Counted from the first letter of the stretch, positions 51,003 to 64,000 are shown. The stretch: 64,000 bases of DNA from Chrysemys picta bellii (GCF_011386835.1 NC_088814.1:6014001-6078000); one strand, 5' to 3'. Numbers and translations are program-made. The notes: generated from the sequence alone by a model not told the origin.

Positions 51003-54000
51003 AAACCCCATTGACCTCAATAGCAGTTTTATCTTAAGCCAGAATTGAGTAAGGATTGTAGGATTTGATCCAGGATTTCTGAGCCAAGAGGCCAATATGG
51101 CGTCTGTGCACAATATGTACCCTATATTGTCATTTAAGAGAAATTCACTGTGTCATGCAGTTTTTCTTTTCAATAGATAAGGGCAATATAGAGTGAATAA
51201 AAAGTTGGGAGTGAACTTCATAGCTACCGAGAGATTGAAGGGCGAGATTCCAAGATAACCCCAAATATCCTAGCGTTCATTCTGCAGCTGTGAAGAACAT
51301 TCAGCATTAAATAATTATAACCAAGCTAATAACTGATTGAAAAGGAATAAAAAGAGACAGGAAACAGAAATCAAAACTCAGCATGAAACAAACAGGATGT
51401 TTACATTTACACAAGTCTAAGAGGTTATGAAAGGAAATTCAGTCAGGGGTGCTTGCAAAACTGACGAGGAGGGCGAATAACCATCATCATCATCATCATC
51501 ATCAAAAAGGTCCCGAAGAGTAAAACATTTCTTTAAAAAAGTGAAATAAGTTTCTGTAGCCTAAAAGCAGAAGGATCTACCTTTACCATTTCCTGTGCTG
51601 CCTCTGAGTCTGAATACCGCCGTCTGTTCAAAATCCGCAAGTGGTGAGAGGGGGGGAAAAAATTCCTGGTCTGAAGAGAAGCAAAACAACTTACACATGT
51701 GGGCAATTTTCCAAGAAACGAAACTTTACTCTGGCTAAAAACACAATCCGAAATGAGGTTTGTAATCTTAGCAGTTAATAACGCATTTAGACGCCTGGTA
51801 CAGTAAAACCTTGTGTGCCTTTTAAAGGACAAGCTGTGGGAAAGAAAATTAAAATAAAGTGGCATTGTTGCTTTGAACCAGTAGTGTGGATGCTAGAATC
51901 TTTCGCCCTTTGAAATAATATTATAAAGTGTTTGAAATAAGTGGGGGTCTGCGTCTCCTCTGGTTGCATACGGATTTCCACACGCATGGAACTCCATTGA
52001 CTTCAGTAGAGTGGCTGCTGGGTTAGTGGGATCCGAATTGGGTCTTGGGATATAATTGGGACCCAGACATATTATTGGAGGGGAAGAGGGAAATGGAATT
52101 AACAAGCCGTGGTAGTGAGAGAAGGCCGGTGGCTTCCACCCAGGGACAGAAGGAAAAGAAAAGCACACTAGAATTAGGTCGTTAAATAATTGCTTCAATA
52201 AAATCTATGGCATGAGACCTTGCAAAAAAAAAAAGGGGGGGGCGTCTTTCAAATAGCTATTTTTACAGCACTTTGCCAACAGCTTAGACTCATACTGAAT
52301 GGAGTTGAGAGAATTTTAGGCAGGCTGGAACGCTGCGAAAGAATAAGAAGTTGGGGTTTATTGTTGCATTTAAACAAGAGTTGTTCATTGTCATTCGTGT
52401 TTGTGGCGGGGTGTGGGGGGTGGAGAGCAGGAGTTGATGTTATTTTGGAAACGAATCAGTTATTATACGGAGCTTTCTGTAGCAATCCCAACATCGCTGC
52501 TTCTTCAGGTGAAGTCGCTCTGATCCTTCTGATTTGGAATGAAAAGAAAACAAATCGCTTCAGATACAAGCCAGGCAAATCAGATGCATCATGGCAACTA
52601 GTTTTTAATTCACAAATAGGATGTTTCCCCTTTTTCCTTCCCACCGCCCTTTGGAAAATAGACTCAGTTCTGTTTTCAACCAAGTGGGGGGGGGGAGGGG
52701 GGAGCAGATTCTGATCTCAGTTACAGCACTTGCATCAGCTGCAATGAACCTTGCTGCTGTCTTTACATTGGTACAAGTGAGATCAAAATCTGGAGGCCAT
52801 GCGTTTACAAGACAGGTTAGTGTTCGCCTTATGGGGAGACTATTACCTAATCGTTGATTATTAACTTTGCAAGATTGTTCATTTCCGGCGTGATGTTCTG
52901 GTGATAATATAAATATCACCTTGTTTCTATTATAAAGACTCACAGAACTTGTTAAAAGTATGGACTGCAGATCGTTTTATGCTGACTCCCCCCCCCCTTT
53001 TTTTTTCTCTCAATGGCTGCTGGTTTAATAGGGAAGATGGGCACATTGCCTACAACAATCACTAGTTGCAGGGATAAAGCATGCCCCCGGTTAAAGGCTA
53101 TAAAACAGTTTTTTACCATTCCGACCCTAGAATAAACTGAATTCACAGCAATCCCTCTGCTACAGAAGAAATAGCAGAGGATATTCTAAACTTGGATATC
53201 ACCTCTATCCTTAGTCATTCGAAACTCAAAGTATGAGGCAAGCACAACTAAAAAATAAATCTCGTCCCAGACGATATAATATTTACTTTTATGCTCATTT
53301 CATAATCTGACATGCAGAAAGGTATTTCCCTTCTTTGATATCATTACATAGTATAGATATAGTTTTTAGGAGCCTACTAACGTGGAATATCTTAGGTTAC
53401 CGAGAAATAACTTTGATCAATATTTCTACCCCAGTGGAAGGCTTGTCTTTACAGACTTTTGCATGCATTGTTCTTGGTGGGCTTCATTTGAAGATCATAT
53501 GTTTTAAGTTAAACGATAAACTTTTGTTTGACTACTAAAATGAAAGCAAATTATCTACAGCCACACATGGAGGCGCGTGTGTACCCACCTGTATCAATAT
53601 TTTTCATTTACCAGTATCGAAAACACCAGTGTGTTGCATAGCATCTGGAGTACATAAGTAGCATCTTATATATTCCATATTGTGTTAAACTGATATAGTA
53701 GCTATCATGTCTATTTCGAATTTAGGTAGAGAAGAAACAGGAGAACTCACAGACAACCGACTGCACGTTATCATTCGAACTATGTATGATCATAGTGAAA
53801 TAACTGAAATAGAAAGTTATAGTTGTATAGCATTTTTGCAATAGGGTTTATAATGAACATAACTTAATAATATGGGGCCACTGAAAAAACCTGGAAGGAA
53901 TTTTAGTGTGTTCCCTGAACTAATATTTTATAATTTAAGCATAGGTGTGGATTTCTTATTCCAAAAATAAAAAAAACTTCCTTCCCTTTATATACATAAA

Positions 54001-54390
54001 GGAATTAGAGAATATCTTTGTAAGAAGTCTCCCGTCGGGAACTGATCCTGATCCCATTGAATTTAGCAGGAGCAGGATGGAACCCTTCATAAGTTGTTAA
54101 TTGTTTTGTGCGTCGTTATACATTCTTGCAAACTGGCACTGATAAAATAGAATTTTTTGGGAAAAAACAACAACCCTGCATACATAATCTCTGGTTTTTA
54201 TTATTATTTTTTGCAAAACTAATAGGGATCCTTGCCAACTTGCTTAGCCCCTAGGTGCTAAAAATTCGTTAATATGGCTTGAGCTGAAAATAAATAAATA
54301 AATAAACAAACAAACAAACAAACAAACGTACCTATCATTTTCCTCTGATCCAACTGCCCTGAATAAACAAAATCGAGGAGAATAACTGGA

Positions 54391-54460
54391 GTAAATCAGG
54401 TAGTTTTATGTTCTTGTGTTTAAAAATAAAACCCCAACAACATGAAACTACCTAATTCAC
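54391..54460 (-). ncRNA. MIR196A1: miR-196 precursor hairpin (mir-196a-1 position); mature 5p TAGGTAGTTTCATGTTGTTGGG at 54454-54433
   Basis: Exact mature miR-196a sequence with a complementary arm forming a stem-loop, at the canonical location upstream of Hox9. Confidence 0.97.
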
Positions 54461-57293
54461 AAAGCAGTTCTAGTTCATTCCTGGGTCAAAGGCTAAAATT
54501 ACCAAGAAAGGCGCCTGGGCGGCCATTTTGTTTGACATCACTTGCAATCTGAACTTTTATAAAAGAAAACAGTTGCTAGGAAACAAAAGCAACAAAAGGA
54601 TCTTTTCAAAGACAAAAAACCCCTACGATTTCACGAAATATCTATTCAGATTATTTCCTATGTACAGTGTCTAGAACGGATCTCTCCTGCAGGAGTTTAC
54701 AAATAGTTTACAAATAGACTAGAGGAAACAGTAAAATACTATTGACTTTGAGAAACAAACGATTATCTCAGCTATAAATAGAGCACAAAAATTTCTCAAG
54801 CTTTTAATAAAAGCAATTGAAAGCATCTTTTTCCATGTGAAAATGTTTTTTGAATAATCTGATTTTTGTTTAAAAAAACCCAAGTATTTGGATAACTTCC
54901 TTTTGACAATAACATTAAAATAAAACCAGTGAATTCTGGAAATCAAAAAATCATAATTAATTTCTCTCTCACCCCCCCCCCCAAAAAGTAAGTATAACTT
55001 GATCCAAGATTTTCAAAGTTTGAATCGATGGGAACAATAGAAAAAGCACCGCCACATCTATTCTATCGCTATAATTTAGCAACTCTAAGGAACTCGTCCC
55101 TTTTTTGCATTGAATATATAAATGATGTGTTTATATAAAATAATTACCAATTTTATAAAGGGGAAGTATTAAACCTAGCAAGCTGAGGAGAGGGTGAGGA
55201 AAGATGGTTGGATAACAGCCCCAAACGGAGTTTTTGCTGAGGTTCAAGGTTCTGTGAGATTTCCTTAATTCTTAGAAGACTTTTAGAACTTTTCAAGCAC
55301 ATGAAACAATTTAAATTTAGATTCCCTTAAAAATATATAACACTGAGATTTTCTACTTCAGTTTTCCCGCTGCCATCATTTTGAAATGTCATAAAATATA
55401 AATTAAATGTCTTACCTCGTGTGCTGTATACTTTTATAAGTGGATTAAATAAATCAACTCACTCGAAAGGCAATAAAGCAAAGATAGCCGTGTTTCTAAA
55501 GGGCAAGTTTCCTAGCGTTTAAAAGTTCATTAGAAGAAAAACCAAACAAACCAAACGCACCACAACAACGAGTCCGAGTTCAAGAGACGCAGGGAGGAGC
55601 CTGAAACTTGACTATAACTTAGTTTGATTTCATTAGCAAAGCCTTTAAAAGACTGGACGGGATGGTATATAAATCTATTGTACCGGAAATACAATAAAAC
55701 TTAGCCCTGTTGTTGAACTTCAAACAGTTTACATCACATCAGGCGGTGAAGAGAAAGAAAACACAGATTTAAAAGAAAACACCACACCACCACCATCCTA
55801 CCATACATCATAAAAGGAGAAATAACTTAGGATCCGAATATCAAGCATGCTAGGTTTTTATTTTTGTGCAATATTAGACCTCTTTTTGAAAATTACAAGA
55901 CAGAGGAAAAAATATTAGTAGACATCTTTGGCGGCGACTGCGATTTAAAATCAAGATGTATTTTTTTATTTCAAATGCATCATTTCACTTTTGACCACAG
56001 TCATGACTGTGCACCAGAGAAGGGGCAGGTTCAAGTTTAAATCAAACTCTGGGGGGAAAAAAACCAAAAGGCTATATTACTATCAAACTTTATTTGCGTT
56101 TCATTGACAAATAATCCACACCCCACACGTGTCAAAACGTCTTATATTGAATTCTATCTGCTGCACCGACTTTTTAAAATTTGAAACCACGAGGTCAGAC
56201 ATTTTCATTCCCCTTCTTCGAAGCTTCCAGCACTAGAGTGACTTTGGTATTGAGAGCTCATCCACTTATACAAAACAACAAACTGGAAGAATATGTTTAT
56301 AATTGAGCTTTCGCTGCTCAAATTTGGAAATTAAAGACCCCCCCCCATTAAATGACAGACTGAAACATTAATTAGACGACCTAGATACGTGTGAAATACA
56401 AAGCTTCGTGTGCCATATAATTTCAAGGCCAGGTTTAAAATAAATAACGCAGAGTTTAATAATAATAATAATAAAGCGACATAAGCTATATATTGGGTTT
56501 AATCCTTGAGCTGCAATAACATTTTACAGTAATGGGACTCCCCCCTCCCCCCTTTCTGGCTGTTGCGAAAGTTCTTCAAAATGTTTTAAAATTAGGCGTC
56601 ACAGACCAGCTAGTGCTCTTATATAGTTAATGGATATCTTAGCTATAGGACAACTTCCACTCATCAAGAGATACGTGCTAAAATTAATAGGCAAGGGGAA
56701 ATGAAAGTCTATGCGTATATATCAATATATGTATATCTGTGTATGTATCTATTTTATATATATGCTTTTGACTCTTAAGTTCTCATTATGGGTTTCCTTG
56801 TGCTTTATTTAGACCTTCACAACGCTATGTTTTTATTAAAATATTGTTATAACAGCTGTTTGTCAGGGTTCCCATCCATCAGAAATGGCCTCTGGGAGTA
56901 TTTGTCATCAGTTCCGTAAGAGTGGTGAAATATTTTCAACCAGAATGTGTTACATATGGAAGGCGCTTATCGCATTTATATGGATAAGATTAAAAAGTTG
57001 GCTTAAAAAACCCTTACAGTCTAGCGTTGTACGAGCTCCATTCCAAAGAAATGTCAGTGGGGCTATTACTTTAGAGTGAATTCTTTTTAACTCTGTTTGA
57101 GCCTAAAGGATATATCACAAACAAAAAAACCCTACGTCGGAATATTTCTTAACCACGTGGTTTAGAAGATAATAAAATATATATTTGAAACCCCTTAACA
57201 TTGTTACAGCCGCGGTAACAAAGGAAAAAATAAATATTACCCCTCCTTTTCTTCCCCCCAAATTGATTTGCGTTGGTTTTATTTAGTCACTTG

Positions 57294-57571
57294 TCACAAT
57301 GAGAACTGAGCTGTTAAATTCTGGTAGTACCCTATTATCTCTAGTCGTTTTTTTTCAGTTTCATCCTGCGGTTTTGGAACCAGATTTTGATTTGTCTAAT
57401 CTGTGAAGTTGACACTTCGTCTGACCTCTAGGCGGCGCTCTCTGGTTAAATACATAAAGAAGAATTTCTTTCCCAGCTCTAGCGTCTGGTATTTAGTATC
57501 AGGGGTTCTTTTTTTCTTTCCACCCTTTGCAGTCAGCCAGCTGCCAGTTATAGGTTCAGCTTTTGTATCCT
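57294..57571 (-). pseudogene. Hoxb10: HoxB10 relic, exon 2 (degenerate group-10 homeobox with frameshifts)
   Basis: Acceptor acttggcag|AG, then [57 protein letters not shown], a +1 T (creating TAG), then [16 protein letters not shown] and further slips, then [25 protein letters not shown] and RMKLKK are group-10 signatures. It sits in the Hox10 slot just 5' of miR-196. Confidence 0.9.
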
Positions 57572-57612
57572 CTGCCAAGTATAAGACAAACATGTGTAAC
57601 TGTGTTTTGATG

Positions 57613-57614
57613 GA

Positions 57615-57668
<54 letters not shown>
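57613..57668. repeat. (GAAA)14 microsatellite, reading (TTTC)14 on the minus strand just upstream of the relic acceptor
   Basis: Direct reading. Confidence 0.95.
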
Positions 57669-57670
<2 letters not shown>

Positions 57671-60600
57671 ATTGGACAAAATTAGATTAATTTTCTATTC
57701 ATTAAAAAAAAAACAGAAAAAGCAACTAATTTGTCCACTTAAAAATCAAAACTAGTTCTCTGTGGACCAAATTCAGAGGAAGGTTCTTGAATTTAGACTG
57801 CCAGTAACAGTCTGTTAGCTCCTTTTTCACTGAACTCAGGTATCTGTTGTAAATCCAAGATAAACGAAATTGAATTATGCTTTTAAAAAAAGTTTCTGTA
57901 AGGCATGGAATAACCAAGATTTTCCAGTCACAAGCAGTTTTACATGAGATAGCAACCCAGGAATGACATTAAAACCAGAAGCCTTTATATTACACAACTG
58001 CATATTTGTACCTTGTTCTTATTACCAGCGCAACCCACTTTATTATATTATTATTCACTGATGTTCAGACGTACATAAAGTAAGCACATGCATCACATTT
58101 TGCCAGGCTTACAATACAGACTCAAAGACTAACGCCGCAGCATCACAAATGGCGATTAGCAAATGAATACAAGGTGCGCAGGGAAATAACCATGATCAGA
58201 GATAATGACGCGACACAGCCTTCATCTCCGAAATTTAGAAGAGAAAGCGATTGGCTGGAAATGTCCACAGGCTATGTAAGACTCCAAGGACCAGTGAAAA
58301 TCATATCCAGTATAAAATGTCATATCCCACCTTTAGGTGAGCATGTACCAGAATAAAAGCGTGGTGGAAAAAAATTAAGGGGGAAAAAGATACAATATCA
58401 TCATATGAAAGAGACACCATCAATTTGTAATTTATGGTCAAATTTTTTTTTAAGCTAACGGTAGCTTCAGGTATTAGACCTACTCCTGAATCCCCCTGCC
58501 AAATTTTTTGTGGTTTTACAATTACATGTTAACAATTTATTATTTAGTATTATTATTAACAATAATAATATTTGACCTCCTGTGGTGGGAAAGTTTCCCA
58601 CAAAGCAAAGGAGAAATTGACTATGAAAAGTGAACCTGACTAGACACAAGTTGGTGCTGTCAAATGCGCCCAGTTAAAAAACAATTCTCAGTCTAATCTC
58701 TTTCAGTCATTTTAGGAGATAGGTGCAACAATAGAAAGTCAACATGAAAAAAGAGTGATTTAAAAAACAAAATCGACGGTGTCCATTTAAGTGAGTCAAA
58801 GAACTCAATAGGAAGCCATTCGACACGCCATTTTGGTCCGTCCAGCATACACCTGAACATATTGAAAAACAGCTGTCAGTAAATATGTTTCCAGGGACTA
58901 AAATCATTTCTAGACTGAGTCATTTTCTGGATAGAAAATCCTAGTATCCGACCCATACTTTATATGTCACGATAGCATGATCACGTCCCCCCAGTATCTA
59001 AAGAATTAAGCAAATCGAAATGTAGGAGCAAATTCTGCTCTCCGTGATATAGAGCCTTGTACTTAAGAGCAGAATCAGGTCTCCCAACTGCGGAGGGGAA
59101 TTTTTCAGACACTAAGAAATATATAAAAAAACCTATGGACGTGGTTCCATTACAGTTAAAAGTTTTCTCAAAATACATCTCTTACTGTCTGCAGACGCTA
59201 AATATAAGTGAACGCTTTGTAAGGAAGATAAAAAACAAACGTGTTCCTCTGTAGCAAGGCACAAACACTAAACTTCAGGTTTTGTTTGCTGCTTTCTTTT
59301 TAATGTATTAGAGGTCAATAGCCTTGCTTCTGTGGCTAATATGGACATATTTAAACACAATAATTGAGTTTTAAATACAGTTGGGGTTAAATTGATTATC
59401 ATATGAACTCCAATCCTTAAATTCAGCACCTAACTTTAGTCACATGAACAATCCCTTAGACAACTCACGTGAGTAAAGTCTTTCATGTGCTTGGCAGGAT
59501 CGAGCTCTCAGTGTGGAAAAAAAAAACAACCAAACTTTATTTTTAAATCTTTATTGGTCTCTGCAGATGCTGCAAAGTTACTGACTCAGTCAATTGAAAT
59601 GTTCTTTAATTAGTAGTAGAGTATTTTGGCAGAGTGGCTAAGCCTTAAAAAGTAATTTAGCAGCAGGTACAGCATAATATAGGAAACATTAGGTTGATTG
59701 CCATTAAATAATGGAAATTACCAAAATGTTTTAAACAAACTTATTTTATGATCCAATGAGCAGTCAATCTGTATATGCACATTTAACTTTACCAAATTAA
59801 ACTTTTAGTCTAGTTGCTTCACATATAGCCTCAAGGGATCATAGTGTAGACCTTTTTTTTCCAGGCATTCACCTACCCCCCCCCAAAAAATCGAAAGATC
59901 ACAGCATTACCTATTTTCAGGGTTGGGTTTTTTGCTTCTATTACTTTCATCCAGTTACATTGATTCCAGGGATATTTTTTAAAGAGGTTTAAATCTTTCT
60001 AATAATTCCCCGTTGTCAAGAATTAGAAATGCTGACTGGCAAAGGCAGTCAAGGAAACATACAAAACTATGCTCTTATTTCAATAAAACATTCAAATTGC
60101 CCATATCAGGTTAGTTTCAGAGGGGAATACAGTTAAAAATTCATAGATTAATGTGTTTAAATAAGCCGGTTGCACTAATAGGTCTTTTTCACGGTTTTCA
60201 ACACTTAGTAGAAAACTATAAAAAGTAGGGAACTGCCAGGAAATTGAATTTAAAGTTACAATAATTATGAAGCAAATGTATATCGATCTATCTAAGCTTT
60301 ATGGAGAAGCGGCACTATAGACGTGGAGAGGAACATAAACCGGACTAGTTCTCCCGAAGTAAGTGGACTTGGCAGTCCTGTTGAAATGACCGCATAGTTT
60401 CAAGTCTAAACTAAGAGACAGCCCTTCTTGTCCACTAAAATGATAGCAATTAAATAACCAATATAAACAGCGTCGTTAAAAATATATCAGGAAGCAAAGA
60501 TATTAGGATGGCTTTGTGAAAATAAAAAAGGTAACTTAGTTAAAGCTAGGTACCTCGTTAAAAGTGCAACCTCACAATTTCTTATTTGGTATTTTTATTC

Positions 60601-61500
60601 TGAAGATCCTGGTTGCAGTTTAAGAAATCCCCACCCTCACATACACCCCGCCGTAGAAAAGTGGCATTTAAATAGTTGGGACGAGTCCACATTTTTGCAT
60701 AGCCTTGATTATTTCATTTTAATTCGATGTCTAGGGTCGAAAGAGATAGTTGTGTTTTTTTTAAAGCCATGCTTGATTATGGACTGGAACGATAACCTCC
60801 CTCTCCCCAAATACAGACATGCTAAGGGAGACAAACATGGGGTGGGGATTTTGCCTCAGATCCTGACATTGGGGGGAAAGGAAGGCAAGGCTGTCTTTAG
60901 GTAAATATTTCAGAGGATTGGAATGAAATGCTAATTAAAAAAACCAGGTCTAACTGGCAGTGCACGTGGCTTAACTGCCTTGGAGTTTCCTACACAGGTG
61001 TCTGAAAGTCTGATGAAAAGAATGCAACATTTTTTGGACTCTACACATGGGAAATGACCAGCGCTCAGCAGGTTTTGAAAGAAACCCTCCAAATTAGTTC
61101 TCCGGTCGCCTACCCACCTTTATTCCAAACTGACTTACCTGTCTGTCTATGACTTTGGACCTCTTAGCTAGAAGAATATCTAAAAAGAATGTTTTTTTCG
61201 TTCAGGGTACCTCTTAGCCATCGCGAAAAAAATTAATCTTTCCAAGCTCTGGGTTATTTTATTTTTAAATCTTTCCTATGGGCCCACTCAGGAATGAGGG
61301 CTGTAATTGAGTCTGGCATGCATGCTTGGGTGCTGTAAATTAATTTTTAACTAAAGGGTCATTGTGTTAGTGAGGGGGGGGCGCCCCCCTTCCCCCACCC
61401 CACCCCCAGCTCCTTGGCAGTCTGGCTAAAAATCACCTTGTTTTGACTGCAAACCTGCTTTTTACCTATACAGTTGCTTTTCTTTTCTTTCCGTACCCAC

Positions 61501-62325
61501 CTTGTATTTCTTGCGACGTTTGGTTGTCTGTAGGCCTGTCTAACAGTGGAGCCTCCTGGAGAAAAAAACGCTGCTCTTCCGTTTTATCCTTCCCAGATGA
61601 CCCAGAGCCGGGTTTCAGTTTAATGGACGCTTCATAATCCCCCTTGACAGTGTCCGAGCAAGATGACGCAGGGCTACTTTCTCGCCGATGTCCATGAGCA
61701 GCAGGGGGGGTGAAATCAGTAGGCAACGAAAGCACCTGGGAACCTGCCGGCTTGATGCCTACCTGAGGCTGTGACGAGCTGTCGATGCTTTGACAAGGTC
61801 CAGTCCCGGGGCTGGTGGTGGACTCAAGCCTGGAGAAGGAGGACCCCTCTGGCTGGGGGGCTGGATAGTTCTTAGCATCAAATCCCAAACTGGACGCCTC
61901 GTCTTTGCCTCTGGGTGCGCACCCACAGGGATCTCTGTGCTGGGGACCACCGTGCCCTGCCGGGTCCCCCCAACCTGGGTGGAAGGGAGGAGGAAGGTAC
62001 CGCAGCAGTCCTGGCTGGTGGCGACTCATCTCACTCCCAAAGGAGGTAAGGGAAATGTTTCCCCCCAGTTTGCAATGGGAAGAAGGGGAGGGTGGAAGGG
62101 GGGGGGAAGATGGGGGCCGAGAAGCAGCTGTCACTGATTGCTTTGGGGACTAGCACTGAGGGGAGGGTAGCCTGCACCAGGAGCTGCACCGGGAGCTGTG
62201 GGGCTGAGGCTGTGACAAAATATACTTTTGGGGGAAGGGGAAAAGGGTCTCTGGCAGTTGACTTATCTGTTAGAAAAGGCGTCTGCGAGCAACTTCCGGT
62301 GAGCGAACCAATCCGAGGTGGACAT
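61501..62325 (-). pseudogene. Hoxb10: Candidate HoxB10 relic, exon 1
   Basis: GC-rich island. ATG at 62325 gives MSTSDWFAHRKLLADAFSNR*, with the same spacing as the group-10 N-terminus MSCSxSPAANSFLVDSLIS. A 211-codon open stretch (62134-61502) ends at donor CAA G|GTGGGT, phase 1, matching the acceptor at 57571. Confidence 0.6.
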
Positions 62326-64000
62326 GACCGCTAGGGCCATCCCCATGGTGTCAATTTTAATGGGAAACTTTACTGGGTTTTTTTCAGAGGACTGGGGTGT
62401 TTCCCCTCCCCAAAAGCAAACATCTGTAGCTAAAGTTGAGCTTTTCCTTGTCTCTCCCGCCAAACCCGTGACTCCAATACAATTATTATTAACCTCCCCA
62501 ATAATATTATGGGATGTTAGTGAGGGTTTTTTAGGAAAGGCTTACGGCGTGAAATCTTTGATGGGCAAGGGAGAAGGGATCTGAGCCGTGAAGAGGGCGG
62601 GAATGTATATCTGATCATGGACGGCAGACCTCTTCCCTATACACAGAACTAAATCTTAACAAGAAGTTGATTTCACAATTACACGTTTTTAACCCTGCCT
62701 TTGGAAGTTTAGGGTTAAAGGAACTGAATGGAGAAGGTAACCTAACCAATCCATTAGCTTTATGCACACATACAAAGAGAGAAATATACATACACCTATG
62801 GTATAGCTATTAAAATATATGTACAACTGGAACATACATTAAATATATACTCATCTGGCACATACAAACGGTACCTAGCACGTTAAAGACAAGATGACCT
62901 GGCCTCCTACTCTGAATTTGTCTTCTATTTTGTTCAATTTTCATACTGATGGGGACTATATACATGAACCAATAAGTAAATAATTGTATTTTAAAAACTA
63001 ATTCCCCTTCGGAAAGTTTTTCACTGTAGAAAAGGCGGGGTGACTCGTCCGGCATTCCATGATGTTGCCTTTTTCTGGATCACCTCGCTGGTTTTTCCAC
63101 CGTTGTTAGTCACGAGCAGCTGGAATTGAGCATGTCAGCAAAAAAAAAAAAAAAAACTAATACTTTTGGGGCAGGCCATTATGTATTTACGATCTCTGGA
63201 CTGTGAAATGAAACAAGTGTTAAATTCCAGTATAAATATTTGTGGTGACAGTACGTAGATTTTAGTCCCTAATAGACTCACACAGAGAAATGGTCTCATT
63301 TGGTATGTACATATTTGTTCCCATTGGTTTTTGCAATAGGCTAACTTTCTTGATTAACTTCCCCCCACAGAAATTCAAGGTCTTGGCCGATTGTCCAAGA
63401 CATAGCGGAATAAGAACATTGTCTTCATAAGAAAAGTTCAATGCTCTAGCAACGGCAAACGCTGCGGGCCTGATTCTGACCTCCGATGTGTGTAAATCAC
63501 CAATAACCCCGATGAAATAGATGGAGTAATGGAGGTGTAAACCCACTAACACTGGATCAGAACCAGCCCCTGTGAGAAACGCATTTATTGCATAAACTGT
63601 TTTAGATTGCACCTTTCCTTAAAAAAAATAGAAAATCTTCCTTTGGAAGAACAAAGAAGCCAAGTTCTGCACTTCCCACCTCAGTATGTATTATACATGT
63701 ACATTTTTTTGGAATGAATTATATGTAGGTTTCGACGAGGGGCCGCACAGGACATTTTTAAAAAACATTCGGCCTGAATCCTAACTCTGCTATTGAGAAA
63801 AAAAAAATGATGTTATCTGTGACAAAATCCTCCCCCTGCTCTCATTGAAAAACCTTTAGGTTTTCAGGTGGTTGAATGGCCACTTTCCAAACGCAGCAGT
63901 TTGGATCAGAGAGTTATAAACTACAGGATGGAGGCAATCTTTGGAAACTGCGTATCCAATTTCGTCTTGAAATACAGCCGCTCTCTAAGGAATGAGCTGG

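Follow-up and report, generated by a model that had tools for sequence, protein, structure and literature searches.

A transcribed exon 1 of HoxB10 in the turtle HoxB cluster, probably retained as an alternative coding exon of HoxB9

The stretch of DNA analyzed here, hereafter the window, comprises 64,000 nucleotides of the Chrysemys picta bellii genome (GCF_011386835.1 NC_088814.1:6014001-6078000, with positions counted from its first letter) and carries the HoxB cluster on its minus strand. HoxB5 to HoxB9 are recognizable by their open frames, exon 1 of HoxB9 matching the Hox9 activation region of Pfam (Hox9_act, E=1.8e-55), and HoxB13 lies outside the window. Proceeding 5' from HoxB9 on the same strand, the order is a mir-196 hairpin, a relic homeobox exon at 57.4 kb and, at 61.5-62.0 kb, the exon that is the subject of this report (Table 1); this slot, 5' of both HoxB9 and mir-196 and on their strand, is that of HoxB10. 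In the HoxA cluster a mir-196 gene likewise lies between HOXA10 and HOXA9. The hairpin sits within a block of 513 bases that shows 92% identity with alligator and is the best-conserved stretch between the relic homeobox exon and HoxB9. Runs of N occur at three places in the window, i.e. 1181-1320 (140 bases), 7720-7979 (260 bases) and 19811-19994 (184 bases).

A first-pass annotation of the window, made from its sequence, had drawn attention to a GC-rich block 3.9 kb upstream of the relic homeobox, and the GC profile bears this out, with values of 0.54-0.61 over 61500-62500 versus 0.33-0.40 in most of the flanking sequence. The block does not qualify as a CpG island, its observed/expected CpG ratio being 0.35-0.43. 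It is present as a single copy in the 2.37 Gb genome, and Trachemys DNA is 98% identical to the window.

Table 1. Features of the interval from HoxB9 exon 2 to the region upstream of HoxB10 exon 1 (window coordinates; a slash marks an exon boundary)
Feature	Coordinates	Strand	Evidence or remarks
HoxB9 homeobox exon (exon 2)	43239..43474	-	acceptor tgtctttcag/CC, phase 1
Alternative acceptor exon	52440..52528	-	..tccaaatcag/AAGGATC; joined to the exon-1 donor; frame stops after 29 codons
mir-196 hairpin	54388..54463	-	Rfam RF00256, 78.2 bits, E=9e-17; between the relic homeobox exon and HoxB9
Relic HoxB10 homeobox exon (ancestral exon 2)	57294..57571	-	ttggcag/; acceptor AG at 57573-57572
Non-conserved downstream exon	57765..58852	-	acceptor AG at 58854-58853; spliced contigs of runs X1, X4, X13 and X9
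Splice donor GTGGGT, phase 1	61495..61500	-	conserved in 6/6 species; used in spliced contigs
HoxB10 exon 1 (by sequence comparison), conserved coding part	61501..62029	-	homology, open frame in six species, RNA contigs
Leader region	62030..62242	-	transcribed; no conserved reading frame
Deeply conserved non-coding block, putative HoxB10 promoter-proximal or 5' UTR element	62243..62370	-	alignment

The conserved frame of exon 1 opens with an ATG at 62029-62027, the same start point (an internal Met) as in the coelacanth and lungfish HoxB10 models, and extends over 176 codons and one further base, the first of a split codon, giving an exon of 529 bases that ends in phase 1 at a junction reading CAAG/GTGGGT (61501/61500); RNA contigs cover it. 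The first-pass annotation had described a frame of 211 codons running up to this donor. Such a frame is indeed open, from 62134 to 61502 (227 codons from stop to stop), although the conserved coding part comprises only 176 codons. Its length exceeds chance (P about 0.01 for 227 codons) as judged by 2000 dinucleotide-preserving shuffles read in six frames, in which the longest frame had a mean of 133 codons and a maximum of 333; a Pfam scan of the exon-1 frame returned no match.

The leader region upstream of the conserved ATG occupies the position taken in sturgeon HoxB10a by the first 56 codons (MSCSERS..), and is covered by RNA contigs that reach 62273-62434. Among the six species compared (five turtles and alligator) its gaps measure 2, 9, 3, 4, 7, 4, 2, 6 and 3 bases and are thus not all multiples of three, implying that a reading frame has not been kept there. 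The sturgeon ATG aligns near 62205, where the turtles and alligator have no ATG, and an in-frame stop, TAG, lies some 50 bases 3' of the aligned position; at the start of the turtle exon the N-terminal MSCSE..S(V/L)xSLI motif is lacking.

Beyond the leader lies a segment of approximately 130 bases (62243..62370) over which turtles and alligator are better conserved than anywhere else in the six-species alignment. It includes GATTGG at 62313-62308, CCGGAAGT at 62299-62292 and AGATAAG at 62268-62262, which by their consensus are putative CCAAT-box-like, ETS-like and GATA-like motifs, respectively. In sturgeon, its aligned counterpart lies roughly 50-110 bases before the hoxb10a start codon, with the motifs GATTsG, GCTCgCmGGAAGT, GAwAAGTC and GACCCTTTT almost invariant. 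The first-pass annotation had assigned to this segment the start of the protein, in the form of a Hox10 N-terminal motif (MSTSDWF..) beginning at an ATG at 62325. That frame can be read in the window, giving MSTSDWFAHRKLLADAFSNR before a TAA at 62265-62263, but its interpretation as coding fails on several counts: the ATG is replaced by ACG in both sea turtles and by TTG in alligator, whereas all six species have the TAA; in a tegu model this DNA motif is read in another frame; and the sturgeon alignment places the segment outside the hoxb10a coding sequence. We read 62243-62370 as probably an old HoxB10 promoter-proximal or 5' UTR element, i.e. as conserved non-coding rather than coding sequence.

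Comparison of sequences indicates that the block from 62029 to 61501 is the orthologue of HoxB10 exon 1. Exon 1 on its own matches coelacanth HoxB10 in BLASTP (E=1e-10), with collinearity from the first Met onwards, beginning at MSRHQPGLLRYLPPPFHPG in the turtle versus MNHHERLGLLPHQLHPG in the coelacanth and, in the multiple alignment, persisting through the end of the exon; significant similarity to HoxB10 exon 1 was found with coelacanth, lungfish, sturgeon, bowfin and shark. The two-exon protein model of Natator aligns with HoxB10 of lungfish, sturgeon, coelacanth and paddlefish with E values from 5e-30 to 9e-18 (5e-30 to 1e-19 for lungfish, coelacanth and sturgeon) and coverage of 83-100%, the matches of the same protein to other Hox10 paralogues being confined to the homeodomain. 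An exhaustive search of 1.84 billion proteins with a profile of exon 1 alone gave 13 matches, none to a bird, mammal or amphibian protein. The fish among them are bowfin, white shark, anchovy and carp, with all of the named entries called Hox-B10a, and the remainder are reptile models and two weak clusters of HoxD10 exon 1 (4.5e-4 to 6.4e-4). Since fish sequences were present in that profile, the test was redone with reptile sequences only; against the fish HoxB10 exon-1 profile hhalign then gave 97.9% and E=3.5e-13 over 173 columns, compared with 0.3% and E=0.22 against HoxD10 exon 1. Exon 1 is therefore closer to HoxB10 than to other Hox10 paralogues by BLASTP, by hhalign and by profile search.

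The intron provides a further line of comparison. Its position at the aligned residue, its phase (1) and much of its boundary sequence are as in sturgeon hoxb10a, i.e. CAAG/GTGGGT .. ttggcag/AG in turtle and CAAG/GTGGGT .. ttggcag/TG in sturgeon, as would be expected for a HoxB10 orthologue with its single intron. The survival of both splice sites is upheld by this positional homology, and the donor at 61501 and the acceptor at 57571 join in frame as read from the sequence. The two-exon architecture that had been put forward recurs exactly in a RefSeq model of Natator depressus (P0005) and a Caretta model (P0083, 'Hox-B10a-like'), and the relic exon is likewise joined to exon 1 in a Lepidochelys model.

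Relative to HoxB10 of fish (coelacanth, lungfish, sturgeon, bowfin, sharks and teleosts), the turtle locus is thus alike in cluster slot and strand, in an exon 1 that is collinear over about 175 residues and shares the motifs LPxxFxPG..W, KDE, CS/TD..K.D and DDKT..Q, in a phase-1 intron with near-identical donor and acceptor, and in a second exon with ..SWLTAK.. and a homeodomain of Hox10 type. It differs in that the homeobox exon is disabled, and, from the ray-finned fish and sharks, in that the N-terminal segment beginning MSCSE.. (56 codons) has no conserved frame; the fish HoxB10 proteins are only 24-28% identical to the turtle exon 1.

The homeobox exon of turtles carries a one-base T insertion after ..NFTD, leading to a stop after helix 2, and a one-codon deletion in helix 1, both of which are common to five turtles; Trachemys and Mauremys have acquired private frameshifts in addition. 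Neither turtle lesion is present in alligator, whose homeobox exon has its own 8-base deletion and a CAA to TAA change. The Pfam Homeodomain model scores 13.9 bits on the turtle relic, compared with a cut-off of 22.9, and an intact 60-residue homeodomain is lacking, so the locus is not a functional HoxB10 gene and only exons of HoxB10 remain. The different lesions in turtles and alligator argue for a late and independent loss, and, as no disabling lesion is held in common, the common ancestor of turtles and crocodilians probably still had an intact homeobox. The exon retains some conserved stretches: turtle and alligator agree at 88-90% over its acceptor and first 52 bases, above the 74% of exon 1, and the acceptor, the first 52 bases and the helix-3 segment together range from 82 to 90% (57294-57620; alligator L002, 14490-14830), with helix 3 (16 residues) still readable past the frameshift.

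Evidence on transcription comes from RNA contigs of four public runs (X1, X4, X9 and X13, from four studies and two organisms, this species and a relative), which were placed on 57000-62800. In all four runs contigs pass directly from 61501 to 58852 on the minus strand, leaving out 2648 bases bounded by GT..AG; these joints identify the contigs as RNA and show that exon 1 is still transcribed and its donor still used. The acceptor at 58852 is the sole exon-1 acceptor common to all four runs, it agrees with the Trachemys and Caretta models P0001 and P0003, and the exon that it opens adds a short unconserved tail (GVCWTDQNG..). A contig of run X1 has a loose end at donor 61501 that maps uniquely to 52499-52528, next to a strong acceptor; the translation of the exon beginning at 52528 is identical to the tail of 'Hox-B9 isoform X3' of Chrysemys picta bellii (P0088). 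Because the joint from 61501 to 52528 spans mir-196, transcripts of exon 1 carry mir-196a-1 in an intron, the spliced host transcript being represented by that one X1 contig and by RefSeq isoform X3.

The junction from 61501 to 57571, which the first-pass annotation had proposed, did not appear in the contigs of the four runs, which can miss rare forms. The relic exon is itself covered by RNA contigs over 57131-57565, beginning six bases from its acceptor. Directly upstream of that acceptor is a (CTTT)n microsatellite (57603-57677), at which the RNA contigs break. Two runs also have short loose ends at 57357 and 57390-57391; these resemble contigs of other Hox mRNAs, matching the conserved helix-3 bases only, rather than transcripts of this locus.

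Whether the exon-1 frame is under constraint was assessed over 62029-61502 in five turtles and alligator, in all of which it is open, using a GY94 codon model with F3x4 frequencies written for the present test. Omega over the six species is 0.58 (likelihood ratio test 12.3, p=0.0005); on the turtle-only branches, which postdate the shared homeobox lesion, it is 0.53 (p=0.003), and on the alligator/stem branch 0.65 (p=0.05). In the shifted frames omega is 1.17 and 1.25, neither value being significant. Third codon positions diverge 1.5-2 times faster in 5 of the 6 species pairs. A mutational artifact behind the values below 1 was rejected: GC1, GC2 and GC3 are 0.61, 0.57 and 0.56, third-position CpG enrichment is absent, and polarized third-position changes show no A/T bias. 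The four indel events inside the frame among the six species are all multiples of three, unlike those in the leader upstream, and between the window and Caretta there is 1 gap in 528 coding bases versus 31 gaps in 2551 bases of intron. Neutral simulation on the fitted tree left all six species stop-free in 0.025% of runs (P=0.00025). Protein models from more than ten squamates have the frame open over 160-193 codons with 34-43% identity to turtle. The exon-1 frame is hence under weak purifying selection (omega about 0.5-0.6), with the caveat that it looks near-neutral against an intron yardstick: dN between emydids and sea turtles is 0.08-0.10, about equal to the mismatch rate of 0.078 in the adjacent intron, and the 74% turtle-alligator identity of exon 1 is no higher than that of neighboring alignable non-coding blocks.

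These results support the interpretation in the first-pass annotation that the homeodomain was lost but exon 1, with most of its frame and its two splice sites, persisted. The label 'relic', as applied there to exon 1, is too weak a term for an exon that is transcribed, uses its donor and has a frame under purifying selection.

A possible reason for the survival of the frame lies at HoxB9. Exon 1, at 529 bases, ends in phase 1, and the HoxB9 acceptor at 43474 is also phase 1, so that the two join in frame; in the window the resulting chimeric frame is open. The join corresponds to 'Hox-B9 isoform X1' of Chrysemys picta bellii (P0087, 254 aa), which is the protein nearest to exon 1, differing from that of the window by one residue. 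Models in which exon 1 is joined in frame to HoxB9 exon 2 occur in about 15 reptile species, all as unreviewed predictions: in turtles (Chrysemys picta bellii and Caretta), in crocodilians (two alligators and gharial) and in more than ten lizards (lacertids, geckos, tegu, an anguid, Sceloporus and two Anolis). Our contigs were placed on 57000-62800, a range that excludes HoxB9 exon 2, and their sole loose end at the donor leads to 52528. Judging from the gene models and the constrained frame, exon 1 probably lives on as an alternative coding exon of HoxB9. Against this, the junctions seen in RNA contigs lead to short unconserved tails with a non-coding or decay-prone look.

Overall, HoxB10 exon 1 has stayed in its ancestral slot (in the order HoxB9, mir-196, HoxB10) and the HoxB10 homeobox exon has died, with different disabling lesions in turtles and alligator; we consider it likely that exon 1 has been kept as a first exon spliced to HoxB9. 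RNA contigs show the donor joined to the exon at 58852 and to that at 52528 beyond mir-196, and in gene models only it is joined to HoxB9 exon 2 and to the dead homeobox exon. A splice to HoxB9 exon 2, which is in frame, would yield a chimera of the HoxB10 N-terminal region and the HoxB9 homeodomain, and it may be because of this isoform that the exon-1 frame has remained open and weakly constrained in turtles, crocodilians and lizards. With the HoxB10 homeobox dead, the chimera would be the sole homeodomain-containing product of exon 1. A second role is also proposed, in which the shared promoter and donor would drive a transcript with mir-196a-1 in its intron, as is partly shown by one contig and one model. 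The stronger proposition, that a functional chimeric factor has been kept since the ancestor of turtles, crocodilians and lizards and that a complete HoxB10 survived past the turtle/crocodilian split, is in our judgment evenly balanced.

The placing of the mir-196 hairpin in an intron by a contig and by isoform X3 would also be accounted for if the block were purely non-coding, i.e. the promoter and first exon of a mir-196a-1 host transcript or lncRNA, with the open frame a by-product. Conservation of the promoter-proximal block, which exceeds that of the frame and extends out to sturgeon, and the non-coding-looking tail provided by the only acceptor common to the four runs, are both consistent with such an origin. 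Nevertheless, we regard it as unlikely, because a promoter and a donor would suffice for this purpose, leaving unexplained the three-base periodicity, the in-frame indels and the maintenance of 176 stop-free codons across reptiles. Moreover, a host-transcript role is compatible with a coding one and forms part of the explanation that we prefer, namely retention of exon 1 as a first exon of HoxB9.

A different possibility, which we rate as quite unlikely, is that exon 1 is a dead pseudogene exon that has stayed open through the slow evolution of turtles and crocodilians, its transcripts being noise that a leftover promoter produces and the 'isoforms' of HoxB9 non-functional read-through. Selection that is specific to the frame and persists on turtle branches after the homeobox lesion is difficult to reconcile with a fossil of this type, as are the exclusively in-frame indels, the paucity of gaps relative to the intron, the low probability of six stop-free species under neutrality and the open frame in more than ten fast-evolving squamates. 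The arguments in its favor are that, at every junction seen in RNA contigs of this species, the frame closes shortly after exon 1, that omega is but moderately below 1 with dN about equal to intron divergence, and that identity with alligator does not rise above that of neighboring alignable non-coding DNA. A chance open frame unrelated to Hox10, as the blank Pfam scan and the frequency of long frames in GC-rich DNA might suggest, has a negligible probability, being refuted by homology, i.e. by collinear similarity over the full length to HoxB10 exon 1 of coelacanth, lungfish, sturgeon, bowfin and shark and by a common intron position, as well as being disfavored by the shuffles.

The mechanism proposed for the chimera has a precedent in the human HOXA10-HOXA9 read-through locus, where the coding regions of two Hox genes are joined in frame (PMC4584094). 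As there, a Hox10 coding exon is spliced in frame to a Hox9 homeobox exon, in the turtle according to gene models; the systems differ in that the upstream gene is intact in HoxA, whereas the turtle HoxB10 homeobox is dead.

The published accounts that we found credit turtles and crocodiles with the same 39 Hox genes as mammals and describe amniotes as without Hoxb10, and HoxB10 is listed as lost in tetrapods or in amniotes. A search of the literature found no description of a HoxB10 relic, or of a HoxB10-HoxB9 chimera, in reptiles. That both HoxB10 exons are recognizable in a turtle, despite this listing, is of interest given that Hox inventories are a standard character in studies of vertebrate evolution; if our reading is correct, the textbook loss of HoxB10 at the fish-tetrapod transition, or its absence from all amniotes, would be wrong in both timing and completeness. 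The locus may also represent a case of the exon of a dying gene being salvaged by a neighboring gene, thereby providing a candidate promoter for mir-196a-1 and a way, open to testing, in which HoxB9 proteins could have diversified by lineage among animals whose axial plans differ as much as those of turtles and lizards.

In some of the lizard models, such as P0066 of Podarcis raffonei and P0076 of Anolis sagrei, an extra in-frame cassette of 33 residues lies between exon 1 and HoxB9 exon 2. Its sequence (AP.LKIDKNL.QE...GRPV..SLE) is conserved between lacertids and anoles, and neither the turtle window nor the alligator locus contains a significant match to it.

The practical gain is modest, in that database names could be unified. 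Automatic RefSeq and Ensembl models already contain exon 1 and its junctions, albeit unreviewed and inconsistently named, and none of the annotated models that we found there names it as HoxB10 exon 1. Many are entered as 'Hox-B9 isoform X1/X3' (Chrysemys, Caretta, Alligator, Gavialis and many lizards), a Caretta model is 'Hox-B10a-like', and the frameshift-corrected model of Chelonia mydas (P0080) is 'LOW QUALITY PROTEIN: Hox-C10-like'. Some models are called 'uncharacterized protein', the copy in Varanus komodoensis (P0067) bears the name 'Ryanodine receptor 2', and a HoxB10-like protein of lungfish (P0008) is named 'Hox-A10-like'.
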